DNA of 64,000 nt from Anthoceros angustus. Lineage: Eukaryota > Plantae > Anthocerotophyta. The notes beneath the pieces are model-generated. The model saw only the letters and a program-made list of their open reading frames with translations. It searched no databases and had not been told where the DNA came from. The DNA lies in contig MU008178.1 in assembly GCA_010909165.1 (NCBI GenBank), positions 1,004,369-1,068,368 of the forward strand, given 5' to 3'. Positions 16,957 to 60,084 of the stretch are shown here, piece after piece. The stretch's first letter is position 1. Every line of letters starts with the position of its first letter. The position numbers were made by a program, and so were the translations under genes.

Positions 16957-19900
16957 ATGCGGGGTGTTTTCAGGATATCATGCCAAGTAGAGAACCTGTG
17001 CAAGGAGGGACTGTTAGACAAGGCACTGGCTGCCCTGCAATGCATGGACCAGCAGGGTTGTGTGCCTTCTGTGCATCTTTATAAGATACTCCTGCAGCTG
17101 TGCATGAAGAAGAAGGCCCTTGCTGAGGCTAAGCAGATATATTCCCATTTTGCAAATCATGGACGGGATTCAACCAGGTTCTTAAGTGATCTTGCGGTGA
17201 CCACATTGGTGAAATGTGGGGGCCTTGCTGATGGACTCCAGTTATTTCGAAGCCTTGCACGTCGAACTGTCTACTCTTGGACAGCCATTATCTCAGGGTA
17301 CATGAATGCTGGATTTTGTCGGGAGGCGGTCTTATGCTATGAGCAAATGCAGCAGGAAGGTGTGAACCCTGACAAATACACATTTGTCAGCCTACTCAAG
17401 GCGTGCAGCAGGTTAGAAGACTTACAAGAGGGCAAGCGTATCCATGCAGATGCCGTGAGATATGGGTATGACTCAGATGTGTTCGTCGGAAGCACCTTGG
17501 TGACCATGTATTCAAGCTGTGGGAGCATGGTGGATGCAGAACAAGTGTTTGACAAATTGTCCCAGCAAGATGTTGTGTCATGGACCACCATGATTGCCGC
17601 ATATGCTCAGCATGGTCAAGGAGAAAAAGCGTTGCAGACTTATTGGAGGATGCAAGAGGAAGGGGTTAGGCCCAACGCCTGGACGTGTGTCAGTGCTCTC
17701 CAAGCTTGTGGTGCCCTTGCGGAGAAGGAACAAAGTGCTGTTGTAGACGGACAGAATGTTAAATTGGAGTTTCTGCAGAACGTCAAAGGCATTCATGCTG
17801 AAGCTGCCGGGAGGGGTTTTGTGAGTGATGTATTTGTGGGTAGCACTTTGGTTAGGATGTATGCAAAGTGTGGGGGCATAATGGATGCTGAGTTTGTATT
17901 TCATCAGTTGTGCAAGCGTGATGTAGTTTTATGGACTGTGATGCTTGCAGCATACGCTCAGCAGGGACAGGGTGCAAAGGCACTGCACATTTTTCGGCAA
18001 ATGCAAGACGAAGGGGTCATGCCAGATGCTCAGACCTTTGGCAGCATTCTCCAAGCATGTGCCGTGATTGCAGAGCAAGAGGAAAGTGCATATGTGGACG
18101 GGTCATATGTGAAGACGGAGTCACTTCAGATAGGGAAGGAAGTTCATGCTGAAGCTGCAAGCATGAATTTCGACTCAGATGCATTTGTCGGTATGACATT
18201 GGTTAACATGTATACAAAGTGTGGCAGCATCAGGGACGCACAGCAGGTGTTTGACAAGCTGTCTCAGCGGGATGTGGTGTCATCGACTGCAATGATTGCA
18301 GCATACGCTCAGCATGACCAAGGACGAAAGGCCTTGCAGATTTATTGCAGAATGCAAGAGGACGGGGTCAGACCAGATACATGGACCTTTGTCAGTGCTC
18401 TCCAGGCTTGTGGCATCCTTGCTGAAAAAGAGGGACATGCCATTGTGGACGGTAGACATGTGCACGTGGAGTGTTTGCAGAAGGGGAAGAGTATTCATGC
18501 AGAGACTGTTAGGAGGGGTCTAGAATCAGATCCATTTGTAGGGAACACATTAGTTAGTATATACGCAAAATGTGGGAGCATGAAGGATGTAGAATACGTG
18601 TTTCTTGAATTATCTCACCGAGACAGGGTATCATGGAATGCAATGCTCACAGCATACATTCTACAGGACCAAGGTGAGGAGTGCTTACAGATCTATGAGG
18701 ATATGCAAGCAGAAGGCATCAGACCTGATGCCCGCACATTTGTTAGTGTTCTCCAAGCATATGGAATCCTGTCCGAGAAGGAGGAGGCTACACTGCTCGA
18801 TGGGCAGAATGTCAGGGTGGGCATGCTACAGAAGGGGAAGATATTGCATGCTGAGGCAGCGGGCAGAGGTTTCGGATCAGACATTTTCATTGCTAGCAGT
18901 TTGGTTAACCTTTATGGAAGATGTGGGAGCATCAAGAACGCAGAGCAGGTGTTTGATGGTTTGTCTGAGCGTAATGTAGTGTCATGGACAGCAATGCTCA
19001 CAGCATATGCTCATCAAGACAAAGGGGAAGAAGGATTGCACATTTATGAGCAGATGCGAGAGGCACAGGTCAGGCCGGATGCTCATACGTTTGTGGCTGC
19101 TCTCCAAGCATGTGGCAGTGTTGCGGAAGTAGAAAGCAGTGCACTTGTGGATGGTCAAAACATCAAAGTGGAGTCCCTGCTCAGGGGAAAGGACATACAT
19201 GCAGGAGCTGCAAGTATGGGCTTTGAATCAGATGTCTTTGTTGGTAGCACTTTGGTCAGCATGTATGCAAAGTGTGGGAGCATCAAGGATGCAGAGCAGG
19301 TGTTTGACAGATTATCCCAGCGCAACGTGGTCTCATGGACTGCGATGATTGCCGCATGTGCGCAGCAGGGACAAGGAGAAAGGGCTTTGCAACTATTTGC
19401 CCAGATGCCAACAGAAGGTATAGAACCAAATGAGGCTACATTTCTCGCTGTCCTAGAAGCTTGTGGCACTACAGGGGCATTGAACGTCTGCCGGCAGACA
19501 CACCGTATTATTTTGGAGAGAGGGCTTGAGCACAGTCCTTTCGTGGGGAACAGTCTAGTTCATGCGTTTAGCAAATGCGGAAGCATGCAGGAGGCTCAGG
19601 AAGTTTTCGACTCACTCTCTGACCCCGATGTGGTGTCATGGAATGCGCTGATCGGTGGCTATGCCCGCAATGGAGGTGTGGAGAACAGTTTAAGATGCTA
19701 CGAGGACATGCATCTGGCAGCTGTGAAACCAGACAGATACACATTCATAGCCCTGCTTTCCGCCTGCAGTCATGCCGGGATGGTGGACAAGGGATTGGAA
19801 TACTTCGAAGCCATGAGCAGAGAGCACGGCATTCCTGCCGAGCTGGAGCACTATGTCTGTATTATGGACCTCGTGGCTCGAGCCGGACTGTTCAGCAAGG

Positions 19901-20301
19901 CTGAGGATTTGCTGTCGGGAATGCCAATGGAGCCTGATCTGCGCGTGTGGCTTTGTTTGTTGGGTGCATGCCAGAAGCACGGTAACGTGCTCCTGGGAAG
20001 ACGGGCCTTCGACGGTGCCGTGGGCATAGATCCAGAACATGCTGCGGCCTACGTGCTCATGTCAAACATCTACGCCCATGTTGGCATGTTTCACCTCGCA
20101 AAGGAAGTTGACGAAATGAGACAGGAAGCCGCGGCCTGGAAGGAGCCCGGGGAAAGCTGGATCGAGTATAGGCAGGAGGTGCACACATTCCTGGCGGGAG
20201 ACAAGAGGCACCAACAATCCGCTTTGGTGGATGGGTTGCTGAAAGAGCTAAGCGCAAGATTGAAGGACCCGGGGTCATTCGAGCAATTGTGTCACCTGTA
20301 G
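16957..20301 (+). CDS. PLS-class pentatricopeptide repeat protein with five long 'LL' motifs, E1/E2 and E+ (PG box), no DYW deaminase; organellar RNA-editing specificity factor
   Basis: 1114-aa ORF of P-L-S triplets (DVVSWTTMI../PDxxTFVSxLxAC../DVFVGSTLVxMYxKCG); C-terminal VWLCLLGAC, AAYVLMSNIYA, KEPGESWIE..HTFLAGD; true 5' end may include an upstream exon. Confidence 0.93.
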   Translation: MRGVFRISCQVENLCKEGLLDKALAALQCMDQQGCVPSVHLYKILLQLCMKKKALAEAKQIYSHFANHGRDSTRFLSDLAVTTLVKCGGLADGLQLFRSLARRTVYSWTAIISGYMNAGFCREAVLCYEQMQQEGVNPDKYTFVSLLKACSRLEDLQEGKRIHADAVRYGYDSDVFVGSTLVTMYSSCGSMVDAEQVFDKLSQQDVVSWTTMIAAYAQHGQGEKALQTYWRMQEEGVRPNAWTCVSALQACGALAEKEQSAVVDGQNVKLEFLQNVKGIHAEAAGRGFVSDVFVGSTLVRMYAKCGGIMDAEFVFHQLCKRDVVLWTVMLAAYAQQGQGAKALHIFRQMQDEGVMPDAQTFGSILQACAVIAEQEESAYVDGSYVKTESLQIGKEVHAEAASMNFDSDAFVGMTLVNMYTKCGSIRDAQQVFDKLSQRDVVSSTAMIAAYAQHDQGRKALQIYCRMQEDGVRPDTWTFVSALQACGILAEKEGHAIVDGRHVHVECLQKGKSIHAETVRRGLESDPFVGNTLVSIYAKCGSMKDVEYVFLELSHRDRVSWNAMLTAYILQDQGEECLQIYEDMQAEGIRPDARTFVSVLQAYGILSEKEEATLLDGQNVRVGMLQKGKILHAEAAGRGFGSDIFIASSLVNLYGRCGSIKNAEQVFDGLSERNVVSWTAMLTAYAHQDKGEEGLHIYEQMREAQVRPDAHTFVAALQACGSVAEVESSALVDGQNIKVESLLRGKDIHAGAASMGFESDVFVGSTLVSMYAKCGSIKDAEQVFDRLSQRNVVSWTAMIAACAQQGQGERALQLFAQMPTEGIEPNEATFLAVLEACGTTGALNVCRQTHRIILERGLEHSPFVGNSLVHAFSKCGSMQEAQEVFDSLSDPDVVSWNALIGGYARNGGVENSLRCYEDMHLAAVKPDRYTFIALLSACSHAGMVDKGLEYFEAMSREHGIPAELEHYVCIMDLVARAGLFSKAEDLLSGMPMEPDLRVWLCLLGACQKHGNVLLGRRAFDGAVGIDPEHAAAYVLMSNIYAHVGMFHLAKEVDEMRQEAAAWKEPGESWIEYRQEVHTFLAGDKRHQQSALVDGLLKELSARLKDPGSFEQLCHL

Positions 20302-20677: not shown

Positions 20678-21364
20678 CTAGTGGCGGCGACGGTGCCTCC
20701 GACGCCGGTGTCTGCGATGCCTTCTCTTGCCCCTCTTGCCCTTGCGGCGACGATGGTGGCGACGGAGCCGTCTCCTTTTCTTGCGGTGCCGCCTCCCGCG
20801 CCGGCGCTTTTTGTGTCTCATTTTGCGTCTCCTCTTCCTGCGCCGGCCTCCCTTCCTCCTCCTCCTCCGCTTCCCCTTCCCCTTCCCCTTCCTCCTTCCC
20901 TTCCTCCTCCTGCGTCGTCTGTGCCTGCGGCGTCGGCCCACGCGGTGGCCTTTGCGTCGTCGCCGCTTCTTTCCCTCACCTGCGTGCGGGAGCTTGTACC
21001 CCGTCTTGCCCTTCACTAGCTTGCCGGTTCTCACGGCGCGGCGGAGCTGGCGCATAAGGTGCTTGCGGAAGCCCTTGGGCATCCCGCCCGGGTGGTGCTT
21101 GTACTTGTCCACGCAGAATCTGATGACCGTCTTGAGCTTCAGCCCATTGCGCTTGTGGATGTGGGCGAAAGCGTCGCGGATGATCATCTTGTAGGTCGGG
21201 TGGCCCTTGTGTCGGGTGCCACGCCGGGAGTGGTGCTTGTGGCGCTTGTGTCCATGGGCGCTTTTGCTCCTGCTCCTGCTCCTGCTGTGGCTTCCCCGCC
21301 GCCGTTTTCTGTGATGGTGTACCGGCGCTGCAGCCGGAGCTGCAGCGTGCGCGACCCCGTCCAT
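20678..21364 (-). CDS. Protamine-like sperm nuclear basic protein: histone H1 globular (winged-helix) domain with Arg/Lys/His-rich tails, intronless
   Basis: HPTYKMIIRDAF..NGLKLKTVIRFCVDKY..FRKHLMRQLRRAVRTGKLVKGKTGYKL (H1/H5 globular pattern); N-terminal SRSRSRS; C-terminal ~95 aa almost only R/K/H/G. Confidence 0.88.
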   Translation of the reverse strand: MDGVAHAAAPAAAPVHHHRKRRRGSHSRSRSRSKSAHGHKRHKHHSRRGTRHKGHPTYKMIIRDAFAHIHKRNGLKLKTVIRFCVDKYKHHPGGMPKGFRKHLMRQLRRAVRTGKLVKGKTGYKLPHAGEGKKRRRRKGHRVGRRRRHRRRRRRKGRRKGKGKGKRRRRRKGGRRRKRRRKMRHKKRRRGRRHRKKRRRLRRHHRRRKGKRGKRRHRRHRRRRHRRRH

Positions 21365-21657
21365 GGATCAATTCACTCCGATTCCCCCTCAGGCCTGGGC
21401 TCCATGGCTGCACACTGGTGCTCCGCGATGCGGGCTGCGATTTCGGCAGGGTGTCCACCCTCTGAGGGTCCCGATTCCTTGGCGCCACTTGGCCTTCCAG
21501 CCGCTTTTAAAGGCTGCGCCCGCGCCCCGAGCTCGCCATTGGTGGCCTTGCCGCCGCCACGGATCGCGCTGCGCCTGACGGTCAGGATTTGCTCCAGCCG
21601 CCATGGATTCCAGCAAGCGTCGCGCTCCATGCGACGCAACGTTCGGGGTTGAGGCCC

Positions 21658-21733
21658 AACCGACTTACCGGCCAACCGCTGTCATGTTCAAGGGATACCA
21701 ACCGTTAACGATCTCCGGTGGCCTTGAACCGTC
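21658..21733. promoter_or_regulatory. Cluster of four AACCG (MYB/DUO1-type) sites upstream of the protamine-like gene
   Basis: AACCGAC 21658, AACCGCT 21674, AACCGTT 21700, AACCGTC 21727; the last three fit AACSGYY (RRCSGTT on the gene strand). Confidence 0.65.
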
Positions 21734-23267
21734 GGGTCAGTCTTGGGGGAGAGCGAGAACCTCCGGCCGAGGGGATGTCTAGTGAGCGCTTAGGGCATCG
21801 AGGAGCCGTGGGCAGGAGGAGGAGATCTCTAGACAACTGGGCGGGGGAAGGAACATCTTTGGATCGATACATGCAGGTAGCACCCGGTCGGCGCGGCATC
21901 GGACGGCCGGGATGTGGTGACAGGTTTAAGGACTGGTCTGACGATCGTGCATCGTCTTCCTTGTACAAGGGTTCGTGTTTCTTTCATGCCTCATATGAAC
22001 ACATGTGCCTTTGTTTAATTGCAGGGTAGGAGTAAGTGGTCGATCGGCGGCACCTCGTCGCTGCCACAGGTGCGGGATCTCAGGTAAGTATACTAATCCA
22101 ATTCTTATTGAGTGCATTGTGCAAGGTGTCGAGGCCAAGTCGCCAATTTTGCAAGCCGTGACAGCCTCCGAGGTACAGGTATTCCAAGACAAGCAGGTTC
22201 ACAAACTCATGCACTGACGGGGACATTAATCAACTGTAACAACACAACCTAGGCCTCTTACTTGTTGAGAATATCCAGCAAGATCTGGTGGTGATACCCT
22301 TGGAAGTATGAGATAGTCCAGTTTAACTATTTGACTCGACACTTGTCCTTAGACATGTGACTGCACGTCGACTTATGTTCCTTGAGTCAGTAATATATAG
22401 ACCCTTTCATGTTCTTAAGCTATGTATGTACTCGGTCGCTCGCTCTCTCGGGACCGCAATTCTTAGTTCTCACCTAGCCTGACAAGGTAACAACTCCGTC
22501 AGACAGTGTAAGGGCCTCCAGCACACACGCACGCACCGAGCCAGTAAGAGGTCTGAACCTTCAAGCTTTTACTTCCTACTCTTCTCAGGGGCAGGTGATT
22601 AGATACCGACAACAAAGGCTGTAAGAGATCTTTTTCAATTATTAATTCGTCGTTAGAGGTAGGTATAATCTTGGTGTATACCCATGCAGAGCCTGTAAGA
22701 AATCAATTCACGACCTATTTATTTGTCGTTGGAGGCAGATATTACCAGACAAAGAAAGAAACTCCAGTACAACTTTGACATCCGCCCTTGAATGTACCCC
22801 CAAGACTGACGGTAGGTTTACCTTTGCCTTGTACCCAGACCTGATTAGCGATAAGCGCCAGAGTCTGTTCGTCCCTTTCACCCTGAGGGGCCTGAGGCCA
22901 TCTGAGAGGATCTCCACACTCCAAGTGGTAGAAGCAGAAACAGCTCACCATCGAAGGTAAAGGTTCCCAGGTAGAGGTGTTCCAATCCTGTTGATATAAG
23001 GTGAGGCGAAACCATAACTAACCTGGCATAGTTCCCCGGTATATCCAAGGACCAATCTACTTCATGAAGCCATTGACAAGCTGCACATAAGACTGAGTGC
23101 CATGCGTAGGACCAAGAGTGCCCCAAACAGTACCCCAGGTGAGGATAGGTAAGAGATAATCTAACATCGTACTTCCCTTCTGCAATTCAGAAGCACATTC
23201 CCTAAAAGATACCTCATGTCATGACCGTACAGGAAGAACTGTCAAAGTTTGCGAACTGAGGAGGGCC

Positions 23268-25565
23268 TTACATTTGCACCGTATTTTTTTTCTCGAACTT
23301 TTGGGCAAAATTTCTCAACACTAGAGCATCTCTGAAAGAGAAGTAGTCTTCGAGACTTGCTTTTGCCCAATGCTTACAGTAGTAGTCATCCGTAACTGCA
23401 AGACATTTCATTGGAAAAGGCCCCTTTGGTAACCTCTGCAAGGCTATCAGAAATCTGTGTCGGGGTTTGATCCTCTGGTCAAGAGACAAAGAGAAATAGG
23501 CTGGAAAGCTGACCACTGTTTGCACTCCACCCTTGAGTTCCCTGACTAGATACGCGTACTTGGGCTTCAGAGAGTTCTCAACAGACAACGAAAATACCTG
23601 CAAAATTGGTACAAGCTCTCAACCTTAGCAAGAGCAGTGACTTGTCACGGCAAAGTATAAGATCAAGACAGATAATAAGCTAACACAATGACCGACAAAC
23701 CTAGTATACCTGTGTCATCCGCGTGAGGACCTTCAAAACGTCCTCTTCACTCATACCGATACTCCTCAGGAACTCAATTCGTGGTCGAATACCCTCCTCA
23801 ACGCTGTAGTGCAACAGTTGTGGATGTTTTGTGACGATCTTCGCCAGAGTCACCTTTGTCACTTTCATTTCCTGTAAGAAAAATTCTACTTGAGGCTCCA
23901 ATGACTCTTCGATGCTCTGAGTCAGTACTTGAGGGCTCCTTGTCACCACTTTGGGGATGTCGAATTCGCTAATCCCCACAACTTTCCGTAGAAAGTCAAC
24001 TCTAGGTTTCAGAGAGTTCTTAAGACTGCACTCCAGTATCGAAGGCCTCACCCTTATCATCTTCCCTACGGTTACTTCAGGTATCCCCAGGCTCCTAAGG
24101 TATTCTATCTTCGGTTTTACCATGCTGTCAACTCTATACTCCAAAATTTGTGGATGCTTTACTATCAACTTACTCAAGAACTTAGATTTAATACCCAAGC
24201 TTCCTAAGAACTGAACTCTACCTTTCACCGCATCCACTCTAAGTTGTAAACAGGCCCTATTACGTTCAGCAATCCTTTGAAGGTCTTCATCCCCTAGACC
24301 TAGTGAGAGGAGGTATTCCACCAGTGGCAGGTACTTGTCATCTATGCTAAGTTGCCTTTGTAAAGACTCGAGCCTTGTATCTACAATATTACTGCTATCC
24401 ATCTCCTGCAAGGGCAAACAATTGTCACAGCTTGCTGAAAATATCACACCCCACAGAACCCAATGTGCTGCCTAAAATGCTCAGCTTTCGCTACCAGAGA
24501 TACTCCAAACAGTCAGGGCGTGGTTGTCAACAAACTCAAATCTTCTGCTCTGATTCTCATAGCTAGCAGTAAATCGATCCTACCAGACGTCAGTCAGCTA
24601 GCATACCCAAATTTTTTACTGGAGCAGAACCAGGGCCAAGATTGTGATTCTTACATTAGGTGGCGCTCGTAGATAGGAGAACGGCTTTCGTGGCATTCTC
24701 CTCATCGAGGAACTCGATGGTTTGGTTGTCCGCTGGCCCTCTTTTTGTGGGGCAGTGAGCCTAAAGGTTGTGACATTTTGATATTTTGGCTGTCGAACCA
24801 TTCGATACACTTGCTCTTCCCACTGCTTCCTCGATAGGGTCCCCTGCCGCTTGTCCAAAGTCAAAGATCCACGAAGATTGACCTTCTGTGCATGTCCAAG
24901 CGGGTATTGCACCTTTAACTCTTCACTATCAGCCTTCCTGATGATTCCATGTCCCTTGTTCTGTTCCGCATTCAAGGTGCTGACGGGTTTGCCAGTGGAT
25001 TTCAGATTAGCTCTTCCCACCTTGTTCCCTTTCCTCAACCCACCCCTTTGGACATTCTCTGGCAACTCAGAAATCTGCGAGTCTTCCAATCCTGACTCCA
25101 CATCCTGTACCGACAGAACCATAATAGTGGACACCTCACCGTAAGTCTCATTGGGTAGAAGGGTGTGGATTCAGCGAGATAACCAACTTGCCTCATCTCT
25201 ATATACTCAAATCATCAAATGCTTGTTGCCTACTGCCTGTCAGTGATGCTCACGACAGGTACAGTGAGCCCTGATAAATGCAAGGTGTTCAAGAATGTGA
25301 CCTGAGAATCAACATCAAAGGAGAGGAGGCTCTCATCTTCATCTTCAGGGCTGAAAGTCAGCAGCGGTTGACCATACCGGGAGCGCCGATTGGGCTTGGA
25401 GATCTGAGGATTCGACTGCACAGAGACTGCAACTTCAGCACGCTCACCCGACGGCTGCCAAGGAACCCAGGCTGCGAAGCTGCTCGGAGGACCAAGGCAG
25501 AAGAAGGAAGACTGCAACCTGGGCGAGCTTGAAGGTGCGCACCACAACGGAGGGGCCAAAGCCAT
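23268..25565 (-). CDS. Organellar mTERF protein, mTERF9-like (about 4 exons)
   Basis: mTERF repeats (HPQILEYRVDSMVKPKIEYL, SPQVLTQSIEESLEP, HPQLLHYSVEEGIRPRIEFL), YFSLSLDQRIKPRHRFL..KGPFP; plastid-transit-like N-terminus with SNP..RRSRYG. Confidence 0.9.
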
Positions 25566-26948: not shown

Positions 26949-39120
<12,172 letters not shown>

Positions 39121-40438: not shown

Positions 40439-40601
40439 ATCCGGGCAATGCAGTGCTATATTTTTGTGCTGGGAATGCGGGCGGTCAAAGCACAGATGCG
40501 ATTAACGGGAAGGGAAAGGATCCGGGTAATGCAGTGTTATATTTTTGTGCTGGGAATGCGGGCGGTCAAACCGCAGGAGGCGATTAACGGGAAGGGAAGG
40601 G
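40439..40601. repeat. Direct tandem duplication (2 x ~81 bp) upstream of the peroxidase
   Basis: ATCCGGG(C/T)AATGCAGTG(C/T)TATATTTTTGTGCTGGGAATGCGGGCGGTCAAA..GCGATTAACGGGAAGGGAA starting at 40439 and 40520. Confidence 0.9.
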
Positions 40602-48201: not shown

Positions 48202-48607
48202 AAGGAAAGAATGCGAGGATGATGGATCCCTCCAGTTGGCGGATATGTCAAAACGGGCGGGTCTACAGTAGGCCGGACTCGGAGAAGGATGGAATCACTA
48301 TTGGTTCACTCAAGAAGGAGGTACAAGCCTCCAACTCGTCGGGCTTCAAGAATCCTTCCACCTCATGCTGGCTGAAAGCTCGACAAATAGGCGGCAGCTT
48401 CTCCCTAGCAAACCAATTGTGGTTTCATCCTTCTCCAAGGTCAGCCTACCTTAGGCTCGACGGACATGACGTATCTAACAACTGTAAAAATCCATTATCC
48501 TTGTTTTCTTTTCCTCCTCATTGAACACCTGTTCTTTAGGTCAATTAATATTTAGGAAACACTCCACCAAGCCTATCTTTGCTTTGCGACAAAGGCTATT
48601 ATTGAAC

Positions 48608-48665
<58 letters not shown>
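48608..48665. repeat. (ATT)n microsatellite
   Basis: Pure TAT/ATT run. Confidence 0.97.
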
Positions 48666-55171: not shown

Positions 55172-57334
55172 TTACATTTCGATGACAGTCCTCTGATAGC
55201 CTCTTTCCGCCACCAGCCGGTCCAAGTAAGCCAGAACCGCGTCTCGCCGCTTCATGAGCTGCTCGACCTCGTCCTGCGAGAGAAAGCCCTGGAACCTCTC
55301 CGCCACCTCCTGCTTCTCCAGGAAGCGCAGACGGAGATAGGTTTTGGCGGAGACGCAGCGCACGGGCCCGGTCTGGAAGGCGTTCTCGTCCGTGAGGGAC
55401 ACCACGGCCTCTTTGCGGAATCCGGCCGCGTGGTCGATGAGCACCGGGAGGGACTTGAAGCGGTCGGCCCAGTGCTCGCCGAAGAGGAAGTGGCCGTGGT
55501 GGCGGTCGCTGTTGTTGAGCAGGCAGTCGAGGATGCGGGTATCGCTGAGGAGGCGGGCGACCGGTACGCCCCAGTTTGTCGCCGGGACTCGCTTCAGCTC
55601 CTTGCTGTTGCGCACGTAGTAGACGAAGGCGCCCTCCTGGAAGTGCTTGGAGCACTTGAGCTCGATGCGGCCGCGGCGGTAGGCCACCGGCGGGACGTAG
55701 TCCATACCCAACAGCAGGTTGAGCTCGTACGCCACCCACTCCACGGGCGCCCGGTGCCAGCCCTCGGCGTCCCCGTACGCCCGCGGCTTGAACAGCGCTT
55801 CCATCTTCTCCCCCGTCCGCTCCTCCTGCAGCTGCACGATGAAGCTCTCGTGGCCGAATTTGCTCGGCGGGTCCATTGGCCGGGATCCCACGATCTTGCC
55901 GTGCGCCAGGATGTCGACGATGCGAGCGTGCCGCTCTGCGCACACCGGGTCTGCAGAGAGCCGGGACTGCTGGATCCGAGAATGCCGCACCGCCTGCGCC
56001 GTCTCCACCAGAGTCTGCATCGCCAGAGCCACGTAGTCGTCGCTGTCCAGGCCGGTGATGAGGCAGCCATCGCCAGTGCACCGCACCGAGGTCTCCATGG
56101 TCACCACCGCGGTTTTTCTCAAGTCGTCCTTCTTTATCACCGTCTTGGTGCAGGAGAGCGCGCCCGGATGTGCCACAACGCATTCCATGCTCTCCGAGAG
56201 GCTGGTCATGGAGCTCACATCCATCTCGTCGTCTGTGGTCTGCTCGGACGTCTCCCCCTCGGACTGCTCCGACTCCGAGCTCGACTGCTGCAACCCGTTC
56301 GAATTCGTGTTCCAGCCGTCATCCGAGCTGCGGCTCTCTTTGAGGTAATTGGCGATGTCCGCAATGTCCCCGCTCGCCTGGTCCTCCACCTCGCAGGCAG
56401 CGTCATCCTCGGATCCGGAGCTCGAGTCGGTGGCGCGTTGCAGCTCCTGAATCAGACTGGTTGACTTGCGGACTTGACCCTCGGACCGCTTCACCTCCTC
56501 CAGCTTTTGCATGATGGCCAGCTTCTTGAGCTTCACCGCCTCGATCCTGGCCTCCTGCGCTTTGGAATTGAGGGACTTGGTGGTCTCCAGCAGCAGCTCC
56601 TGGAAGTCCTTCATCTGCTTGCTCATCACCTCGTTCTGGATCTGAATGGTGTGGATGTTGGAGAGAATGCCCTGCAAATCCACATCCAGCTGGCCGGCGT
56701 TGTCCTGAGACTGTTGCAAGGCGGAATCCAGGCTGAATTTGATGCTCCCGGAAGCAGAATGTGGGGCTCCGACAAGCAACTGCGGCCCTGAGCTGCTCTC
56801 CACGTCCGGAGCCACATCAAGCAGGCCTCCGGCGGGAGCAACATTGATGGGAGATCCTGCAGCAGCAGCAGTAGTGCCAGGAACCGAGAGAGGGGACGGT
56901 GAAGCACTGAGATAAGGGGAACTTGCCTCATCGGTAACAGACGAAAAATCGGAGCCCGAGTTGGAGAGCGAGTGGCGCGTCATGCGGTATTGACTCAATC
57001 CCGCTGGAGAGTAGCGCATACCCAGCGCCACCTTAGCGGGAGTGGTACAAGGCGCAGCAGCGCTGGCACCGCCAGTGGAAGATGCGGGAAAGGAAAAAGA
57101 CACAGTGAGAAAAGGCGAAGCTCCGGTTCCGGTTCCGGTTCCGGCTCCGGCTTCGGCTTCGGCTCCGGCTCCAGCCACAACTCCTCCTCCTCCTCTTCCC
57201 AGGCCCTGCATCAAATTGAAACCCCGGTTGTGCCCGCACAGCTGCTGCTCCTTGATCCGGAAGCCAGACCGGGGAGAAGAAGCATCGGACACTACTGTGA
57301 GCCATAGCTTGTTGGCATGTGCCACCACCTCCAT
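55172..57334 (-). CDS. Intronless atypical kinase (PI4K type II/Fam20-like fold) with long low-complexity N-terminus and a coiled coil
   Basis: ALFKPR, EWVAYELNLLLGMDYVPP, ILDCLLNNSDRHHGHFL, VLIDHAAGF; first ATG at 57334 within a 725-codon open frame. Confidence 0.78.
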   Translation of the reverse strand: MEVVAHANKLWLTVVSDASSPRSGFRIKEQQLCGHNRGFNLMQGLGRGGGGVVAGAGAEAEAGAGTGTGTGASPFLTVSFSFPASSTGGASAAAPCTTPAKVALGMRYSPAGLSQYRMTRHSLSNSGSDFSSVTDEASSPYLSASPSPLSVPGTTAAAAGSPINVAPAGGLLDVAPDVESSSGPQLLVGAPHSASGSIKFSLDSALQQSQDNAGQLDVDLQGILSNIHTIQIQNEVMSKQMKDFQELLLETTKSLNSKAQEARIEAVKLKKLAIMQKLEEVKRSEGQVRKSTSLIQELQRATDSSSGSEDDAACEVEDQASGDIADIANYLKESRSSDDGWNTNSNGLQQSSSESEQSEGETSEQTTDDEMDVSSMTSLSESMECVVAHPGALSCTKTVIKKDDLRKTAVVTMETSVRCTGDGCLITGLDSDDYVALAMQTLVETAQAVRHSRIQQSRLSADPVCAERHARIVDILAHGKIVGSRPMDPPSKFGHESFIVQLQEERTGEKMEALFKPRAYGDAEGWHRAPVEWVAYELNLLLGMDYVPPVAYRRGRIELKCSKHFQEGAFVYYVRNSKELKRVPATNWGVPVARLLSDTRILDCLLNNSDRHHGHFLFGEHWADRFKSLPVLIDHAAGFRKEAVVSLTDENAFQTGPVRCVSAKTYLRLRFLEKQEVAERFQGFLSQDEVEQLMKRRDAVLAYLDRLVAERGYQRTVIEM

Positions 57335-58649
57335 AGCCAGCAGCTTCAAGCCAGGCTATTAGGCAGTGAAAATGAATCTTGAGCGGCTCAACAAGCCTAG
57401 CCCGGCGCCGACGCCTCCTCTTTCCCGCCTCCGGCTCCTCACCGTCACAAAAGGGAGCCGGGGGAGACGGAGCGACCGCAACAATTTCTGTTGCTGTGCG
57501 GCGGTAAGGATCGTCCTCTCGGTATCATCGTCTCAAAGAGTGGATGAGAAAAATTTCAAGATTCAGTCTCCCCTCCCCGCTCCTCCCACTTGAGCTTATC
57601 CCCTCCTGCAAGAAACGCACACTGGCCCGAGCAGCCGCGCACGCTGAAACCCCAGGCGCAACATTCGCGTGAATTCTCCAAGCCGGGAGCTTCTTGGAAC
57701 GGGAAACGAGATTTTTGCACAGCACACGAAAGGACCAGGGATCAGCCTCACCTTCACTGTCCGGATGCACCTTCCGGATGAGGCGATCTGTGTGAATCAG
57801 GCAGTCATGCCCGGCGCGGTGACAGCGTGACACTTCCTTCCCCGGGCCGCCGCTCCCCGCTCCCCACTGCCCGGCCCGTGCTGGAGTGCCAGGTGCAACC
57901 AACCAACTGGTGCGTGATTTACAATTCCGCGCTTGCAATGCTAACTTGGTGTGGAGGCCATATGCATGGACCATGGTGAAGCGGTCAGAGGCTGCCAGTG
58001 CCGGAGGCGGGCCCGATCTCACTGTGTGCCCATCCCCGTGCTGAGACACTGTTTGGATCTGCATTAGGCACCTCATCAGCCCTGATTACCCTCCCGAATC
58101 CGACCAGAAGAGCTGCCGCACCGCACACCAAAATATCGCCCTCGTCCTGATTGCAGATATTTCACGCAAACCTGCCAGCCGGAGCCCCATTGGCCGGAGA
58201 GCAGGGACGGCACTGGCCTCCAGGCATCCGGCCCCGGCCCCGGCCCAGTTTCCCAAAAGCGAAAGCGTAACGTGCAACAGAACTCGACCGGGGCCCGGGG
58301 GCCCCGCCCGGCCCGAAAGAAGCGGGAAAGAATCGTTATCGGGATCCTGTGACACACAAGCCACGCCGGCCAAAGCGCCCGGTGAAGTGAACTCTGCCGC
58401 GAGAGAAGAACCCAAAACAAAGGCAACGCAAGGACGGAAGAAGCGAGTCGTGAAACAACCACAAATCGCGACCCCGTCAATCTTACTCTTGTGCAAATCT
58501 TACTCACGGTAAATAGATAACGCCGTCTCGTCTTCTGAATCGGAAGCCACAGTGGGCAGAGATCCGTGTCAGCGGGTGGCGTGAAGATTCGTCTCCCGCA
58601 ATGTTCTGTCTTGGGGGGCATTTGAGCTGGTAGCTCGGGACGAGTCGTC

Positions 58650-60084
58650 ATGGCGGCGGTGGCGATGCCGGGCGCCATGGACGGGCTGGCCCCGGGCTTT
58701 CTGTGGCCGCCCCCCCCAGCGATTCTGAAGGAAATTGATGAGAAGGAGGAGGAGCAGCAGCAGCAGCAGCAGGATGTGCCGCTCTTCGACCTCTCTATTC
58801 TTGAGGGTGGGGGCGAGGCGGGCAGGGCGAGGCTGGCGCGGGAGGTGGGGCAGGCGGCTCGGGACTGGGGCTTCTTCCAGATCGTGAACCACGGCGTGTC
58901 GTTGGACCTCGTGGAGCACGTGGAGGCCCTGGCGCGATCCCTGTTCGCGCTGCCCTTCGAGCAGAAGCTGGCGGGGTGCTGCCCCGGCCCGTCGGATGGA
59001 TCCTCCGTGGGATACCGGGTCGGGGGCGTCCCCGAGCCCCTGCCGCGTGCACCCGTCCTGCGCAGGAGCTCCTCCAACCTCTTCCTGTGGCAGCAGAACT
59101 TCACCGTCTTCAACGACCCCGGGATTATCCAGCACTACTCCAACAGAATCTGGCCCGACCCCGACCGAGCCCAGGAATTCAGGTATCCAGCTGCAGGCCC
59201 GGCGTGCGATGTGATTCCGTTGTCAAAATTCATCCCTTGGCAATGCGCTTGCTGATCGATCACCGGAATGGATGGGATGGGATGGGATTGGATTGGATTG
59301 GATTGGATTGGATTGGATTGGATTGGGTTGCATGGAACACAGCGCCAGGCTGGGGGAGTACGTGATGGCGGCGGAGAAGGTGGCGAAGCAGATGGTGGAG
59401 CTGCTGACGGAGGCGCTGGGGCCCGGGGTGGAGCGGGATTGCATCACGCGCTACTGCGGCGGCGCGGACAGTTTCACCACGCACCGTCTCAATTTCTACC
59501 CCAACTGCCCGGAGCCGTCCAAGAGCATCGGCGTGGTGCCGCACTCCGACCCATCCGTGCTCACCGTGCTGCACCAGGACCACGTGGGCGGGCTCGAGAT
59601 CCTCAAGGACGGGCGCTGGGTTTTCGTGAAGCCGCATCCCGGGGCCTTCGTCGTCAACGTCGGGGACATTCTCCAGGTGACCATCCCAATCGTCTCGTCT
59701 CTCGCTCACCGACGTCGTAAGCGCTGAATTCATCTCAATGCTGGTGGACGTGTCTGTGTTTAATTTCGTGCTGCTGGGTTGCAGGCTGTGAGCAATGACG
59801 TATATCCCAGCGTGATGCATCGAGCGCAGGTGCATCCCGACACGCCCAGGCTGTCCATGGCCTTGTTCTACTCCCCCCTCAAGGACGCCACCGTGGCGCC
59901 CTTGCCCCAGCTGCTCGACTCTCACCACCCGCCCGTTTACAGGCCCTTCACCTACGCAGAATACCTCGCCTTGTTCAAATCGCGGCAGCCCAGCAGCAAC
60001 AGCCTCCTTGCCTACGTCAGGGCAGATTTTTGTGACGACCGTCGGCAGACCAAGGACTACGGTAGCGAGGATGTTGATTCTTAA
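58650..60084 (+). CDS. 2-oxoglutarate/Fe(II) dioxygenase (DOXC), canonical active site; exons approx. 58650-59183, 59344-59676, 59785-60084
   Basis: VPLFDL..DWGFFQIVNHGV, NFYPNCPEP, PHSD (HxD), VMHRA, RLS (RxS). Confidence 0.92.
59270..59324. repeat. Compound (GGATG)n(GGATT)n microsatellite in intron 1 of the second 2OGD
   Basis: Direct reading. Confidence 0.95.

Follow-up and report, generated by a model that had tools for sequence, protein, structure and literature searches.

A cluster of MYB-type sites upstream of a protamine-like gene

Four AACCG cores are packed within 76 bp upstream of a gene for a protamine-like protein in the Anthoceros window (the whole 64-kb stretch of DNA analysed here). 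We propose, with a probability of roughly 45%, that they are functional MYB sites, clustered in the proximal promoter, through which, most likely, a DUO1 orthologue would switch on a sperm-chromatin protein. Under this proposal, the DUO1 orthologue of a seed-free plant would be made in the cells that form spermatids and would occupy three or four RRCSGTT-type sites upstream of the protamine-like gene. Its binding would activate the gene at a late stage of sperm formation, and the Arg-rich product would then condense the sperm chromatin. From the sequence, we infer that a MYB factor binds the sites, that this factor is DUO1 and that the gene is expressed specifically in sperm. The 76-bp fragment could reveal whether the link between DUO1 and sperm chromatin is direct and common across land plants; if another MYB factor reads the sites, or none does, the resemblance would be a mere coincidence of motifs.

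The sites were compared with the RRCSGTT consensus of DUO1 and with three other plant MYB motifs, namely CNGTTR (the generic MYB site type I), YAACSGMC (GAMYB-type) and GKTWGGTR (the AC element). All four have their AACCG core on the plus strand and are given here as features of the minus strand, on which the gene lies. Site 1 (21658..21664, minus strand) reads AACCGAC on the plus strand and GTCGGTT in gene orientation; it satisfies CNGTTR, not RRCSGTT, and it alone among the four sites matches YAACSGMC (CAACCGAC). Site 2 (21674..21680, minus strand; AACCGCT on the plus strand, AGCGGTT in gene orientation) satisfies both RRCSGTT and CNGTTR. Site 3 (21700..21706, minus strand) is the palindrome AACCGTT/AACGGTT, which satisfies RRCSGTT in both orientations and CNGTTR as well, and it overlaps an AC-type element, GGTTGGTA, that matches GKTWGGTR. 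Site 4 (21727..21733, minus strand; AACCGTC on the plus strand, GACGGTT in gene orientation) satisfies RRCSGTT, not CNGTTR. The RR/YY positions fixed by the DUO1 consensus differ between the sites, with site 1 failing them. Sites 1–3 are embedded in the heptamer CCAACCG, three of whose five occurrences in the 64-kb window are found here.

The cluster lies 294–369 bp upstream of the ATG (at 21364, minus strand). RRCSGTT has four matches in the 2-kb spacer that separates the protamine-like gene from the next gene, an mTERF gene, when the palindrome is counted twice; all four fall between -316 and -369 from the ATG, and the remainder of the spacer has none. The initial annotation had described four same-orientation AACCG cores within 76 bp upstream of the gene, and our recount returned the same count, coordinates and distances. 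The three AACSGYY (RRCSGTT) matches that it had listed were found again at 21674 (AACCGCT), 21700 (AACCGTT) and 21727 (AACCGTC).

Two trivial origins of the cluster were rejected. Against a repeat origin, the window showed zero tandem or dispersed repeats beneath the cluster and zero second copies of the region, and the search for a coding or RNA-family origin gave zero Pfam and zero Rfam matches over the cluster.

The protamine-like gene and its putative promoter

The gene that the cluster would serve is an intronless ORF of 228 aa (20678..21364, minus strand), with an in-frame stop codon 6 nt ahead of its ATG. A linker-histone globular domain was detected at aa 55–122 (Pfam PF00538, E 3.6e-6, above the gathering score), and the tail that follows (aa 123–228) is composed of 52% Arg, 18% Lys and 10% His. 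The predicted protein has, as PL-type H1-derived sperm proteins do, a linker-histone winged-helix domain and an Arg-dominated tail. Its nearest Atlas clusters, which are based on language-model features and serve as a lead only, were mollusc H15, arthropod 'protamine-like' and H5. Word searches of sequence collections, with the whole protein and with the domain alone, returned no orthologue of the gene, and exact look-ups of this protein and of its PPR neighbour returned no match in the collections. An exhaustive HMMER search with aa 1–135 retrieved ordinary plant H1 only, at 33% identity or less, with no Arg-rich protein among the matches.

The protamine-like gene is flanked by a PPR gene (16957–20301, plus strand) and the mTERF gene (23701–25134, minus strand). 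The mTERF gene faces the cluster with its 3' end, and the PPR gene lies on the far side of the protamine-like ORF. Neither can therefore take the cluster as its promoter, which makes the protamine-like gene the sole recognisable candidate.

Several elements between the cluster and the ATG help to place the transcription start. A TATA-like TTTAAAA (21505..21511, minus strand), putatively part of the core promoter, is found 147 bp before the ATG, and a CCAAT box (21538..21542, minus strand) precedes this element by about 30 bp, at -178. Elsewhere in the window, a different gene shows a comparable spacing between a TATAAAA and its ATG. If transcription started upstream of the cluster, the leader would contain five upstream ATGs, so that a start between the TATA-like box and the gene is the more probable. 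From the positions of the TATA-like element and the CCAAT box, the spacing of the TATAAAA in the other gene and the count of upstream ATGs, we infer a transcription start near 21480, and the cluster would then be situated about 180–250 bp upstream of it. The putative 5' UTR would include an upstream ORF of 10 codons (MEPRPEGESE; 21373..21405, minus strand).

Oct, hexamer and nonamer motifs are characteristic of replication-dependent plant histone promoters. None of them (Oct, CGCGGATC; hexamer, ACGTCA; nonamer, CATCCAACG) was found in 21365–23400 on either strand, nor was an E2F site found upstream of the protamine-like gene. A bacterial-type promoter scan, a type of scan irrelevant to a plant gene, detected no promoter-like site.

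Departure of the cluster from chance expectation

AACCG is under-represented in the window, whose two strands together hold 48 copies where dinucleotide shuffles have 80.6 ± 8.5, and AACSGYY is likewise depleted over the whole window (22 observed, 40.7 expected from dinucleotide shuffling). The scarcity of these words window-wide makes their local accumulation more conspicuous. At least four same-strand AACCG within 75 bp never occurred in 1000 dinucleotide-shuffled versions of the window, and at least three same-strand AACSGYY within 60 bp occurred in 6 of 1000. We also generated order-3 Markov sequence in two sets of 20 Mb, the model being trained on the window for one set and on the GC-rich tiles of the window for the other. 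AACCG quadruplets were absent from these 2 x 20 Mb, and RRCSGTT triplets numbered zero in the window-trained set and three in the set trained on GC-rich tiles. When the local composition was retained by shuffling 600 bp around the cluster (63% GC), the observed count was reached in 97 of 5000 shuffles for AACCG, of which 4 were observed and 1.1 expected, and in 13 of 5000 for AACSGYY.

When all 1024 pentamers were scanned without preselection, the AACCG cluster took rank 29, and every entry ranked higher was low-complexity sequence, a microsatellite, or a duplication that was either tandem or short and local. The scan p of the cluster, about 5e-5, rises to about 0.05 once the 1024 pentamers are corrected for; this value and the other cluster statistics apply to a motif that was picked with the DUO1 hypothesis already in mind, and the shuffle and Markov backgrounds are smoother and less clumpy than real genomes. 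The four-site cluster is real and, by these simple models, non-random.

It is rather unlikely, in our estimate, that the cluster has no function and represents a neutral local surplus of a single short word within GC-rich spacer DNA, which drew notice because it was being looked for. Such a surplus would agree with the modest excess of AACCG under local composition and with the p of about 0.05 that is left by the correction. It sits less easily with the zero occurrences in 1000 shuffles of the window and in 40 Mb of Markov sequence, with the placement of all sites on the same strand and the identical 7-mer in three of them, and with a position that is right for a proximal promoter.

A second accumulation of the core was seen elsewhere in the window, where three minus-strand AACCG at 57122–57166 belong to a hexanucleotide repeat of TCCGGT/TCCGGC units. 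This repeat is a coding microsatellite within the minus-strand ORF 55172–57349, which has a weak Fam20C-like match, and is no site cluster.

Comparison with known DUO1 targets

The DUO1 sites of Arabidopsis were reportedly defined by Borg in 2011. DUO1 proteins are R2R3 MYBs distinguished by an additional lysine between R2 and R3 (PMC6290024). The RRCSGTT consensus was derived from protein-binding microarrays (Higo et al. 2018, PMC6290024), and the same study reported that expression of the protamine-like gene MpPRM requires MpDUO1 in Marchantia (PMC6290024). The initial annotation had relied on both points, describing AACSGYY/RRCSGTT as the reported DUO1 site and MpPRM as dependent on DUO1, and both are indeed found in that paper. 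The promoters of DUO1 targets contain one to three RRCSGTT motifs within 2 kb, and those of MpGCS1 and MpGEX2, which are independent of MpDUO1, contain none (PMC6290024, Supplementary Table 1). At MpTUA5 and MpTUB4, MpDUO1 ChIP signal was observed close to the transcription start, with the motif at the same place (Inoue et al. 2026, PMC12938844), and a 2.7-kb MpPRM promoter is active in sperm (PMC6171868). As far as D'Ippolito 2019 is cited in PMC12849711, bryophyte sperm contain H1-derived protamine-like proteins, and liverworts possess male-specific H1-derived protamines.

None of PMC6290024, PMC12938844 and PMC6171868 reports that DUO1 binds a PRM promoter directly. As far as the published reports found go, the link between DUO1 and PRM in Marchantia is one of expression dependence only. 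Our literature search found no published dissection of the sites in the MpPRM promoter, and no publication that pairs DUO1 with AACCGTC.

The Anthoceros cluster resembles the promoters with DUO1 sites (HTR10, DAZ1, GCS1 and GEX2 of Arabidopsis; DAZ1, TUA5 and TUB4 of Marchantia) in its short RRCSGTT motifs, of which those promoters have one to three each, near the transcription start (PMC6290024; PMC12938844). As with HTR10 in Arabidopsis and PRM in Marchantia, the target here would be a putative sperm-chromatin gene. Unlike in the known DUO1 promoters, the Anthoceros sites are concentrated, three to four in 76 bp, on one strand and with an additional common CC flank; the lineage is neither Marchantia nor a flowering plant. 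The predicted protein, like MpPRM and the liverwort protamines, combines a fold of the linker-histone type with an Arg-rich tail. It differs in having no close relative detectable by sequence; its best matches are plant H1 of the ordinary type, at no more than 33% identity.

If at least one RRCSGTT in the proximal upstream region is taken as the mark of a DUO1 target, the protamine-like gene has three such sites, with four matches. In how many sites it has, where they lie and what they read, the cluster fits DUO1 targets. The DUO1-type cluster in front of the protamine-like gene is best described as a prediction, plausibly a further case of a known type. The initial annotation had read it as a candidate module of a DUO1 sperm regulon. 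Those parts of its reading that concern a non-random cluster, the three RRCSGTT sites and their proximity to an H1-derived Arg-rich gene held up; the assignment to DUO1 specifically is not supported by the sites, which do not single out this factor.

A bolder form of the proposal holds that DUO1 acts on the protamine-like gene directly, by way of a dense same-strand array, and that this layout recurs before other protamine-like genes of the genome. We regard this form as doubtful. If it were true, DUO1 control of H1-derived sperm protamines would be ancestral and hard-wired in the land plants with swimming sperm, and the 76-bp module would represent a minimal sperm-specific enhancer.

Other MYB factors as readers of the cluster

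In its sequence, the cluster does not single out DUO1 among MYB factors, because three of the four sites fit CNGTTR equally well and the common CC flank falls outside the DUO1 consensus. The generic CNGTTR, with three of four sites, does neither better nor worse than the DUO1 consensus (also three of four), and YAACSGMC fits one of four. DUO1 sites are in this case indistinguishable from other MYB sites, and the DUO1 reading is, for this reason, a testable prediction and no discovery.

The module could accordingly be functional and have a different reader, namely a GAMYB-type (subgroup 18) R2R3-MYB, a 3R-MYB or a MYB that binds AC elements, in which case nothing specific about a DUO1 circuit would follow. 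We consider this unlikely. The CCAACCG shared by sites 1–3, all of which match CNGTTR, would suit such a factor, and the common CC flank is on the side that the DUO1 consensus leaves free. Site 1, through YAACSGMC, resembles GAMYB-type sites, and site 3, through GKTWGGTR, an AC element; each of these two motifs fits a single site only. Site 4 departs from the generic and the GAMYB-type motif, matching neither, and fits RRCSGTT instead. A 3R-MYB would be expected to act through the MSA element of G2/M genes, YCYAACGGYY, which is usually repeated; this consensus had zero matches upstream of the protamine-like gene, and its AACGG core occurred once, in the palindromic site 3. The class of protamine-like genes is, moreover, already known to depend on DUO1 in Marchantia (PMC6290024), and no report of the control of protamine-like genes by generic or GAMYB-type MYB factors was found in the literature.

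A very unlikely alternative, that the sites belong to an unannotated plus-strand transcript that begins within or crosses 21600–22100 or to the relic of a mobile element, can draw on the short plus-strand ORFs 21603–21782 and 21718–22029, which span the cluster, and on a splice-donor-like AGGTAAGT at ~22083, and is opposed by the lack of Pfam matches to these ORFs and of Rfam matches to the region, by the single occurrence of the region in the window, with no second copy, and by the absence of terminal and tandem repeats.

Relatives of the neighbouring gene and other features of the window

The PPR neighbour had no orthologue in the collections. Its best relatives, mostly Logan contigs, are at most 50% identical to it and include matches from lycophytes, ferns and conifers (also 50% identity or less); the identity of these relatives points to a seed-free land plant as the lineage. 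Three Logan contigs with PPR relatives (40–50% identity), which come from runs SRR33208241 and SRR33208242, were looked up and compared for synteny as four loci (L001–L004). None of the four contained an H1-like gene or DNA in common with the cluster region, and all were non-syntenic with the window. On one of the contigs, an mTERF gene adjoins a PPR gene, yet the arrangement is not collinear with that of the window.

Beyond the mTERF gene, a run of long ORFs on the plus strand (28284–39120) encodes Neurobeachin/BDCP alpha-solenoid, PH-BEACH, BEACH and WD40 domains. These ORFs are the very long exons of a single large BEACH-domain gene and do not belong to a retroelement. At 40470–40600, a direct duplication of about 70 bp gives way to (GGGAA)n and (GCTGAA)n runs, upstream of a TATAAAA (~40739) and of an ORF that starts at ~40908 and has a signal-peptide-like N-terminus. 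Microsatellites were also observed at 48597–48662, (ATT)n, and at 59269–59322, (ATTGG)n.
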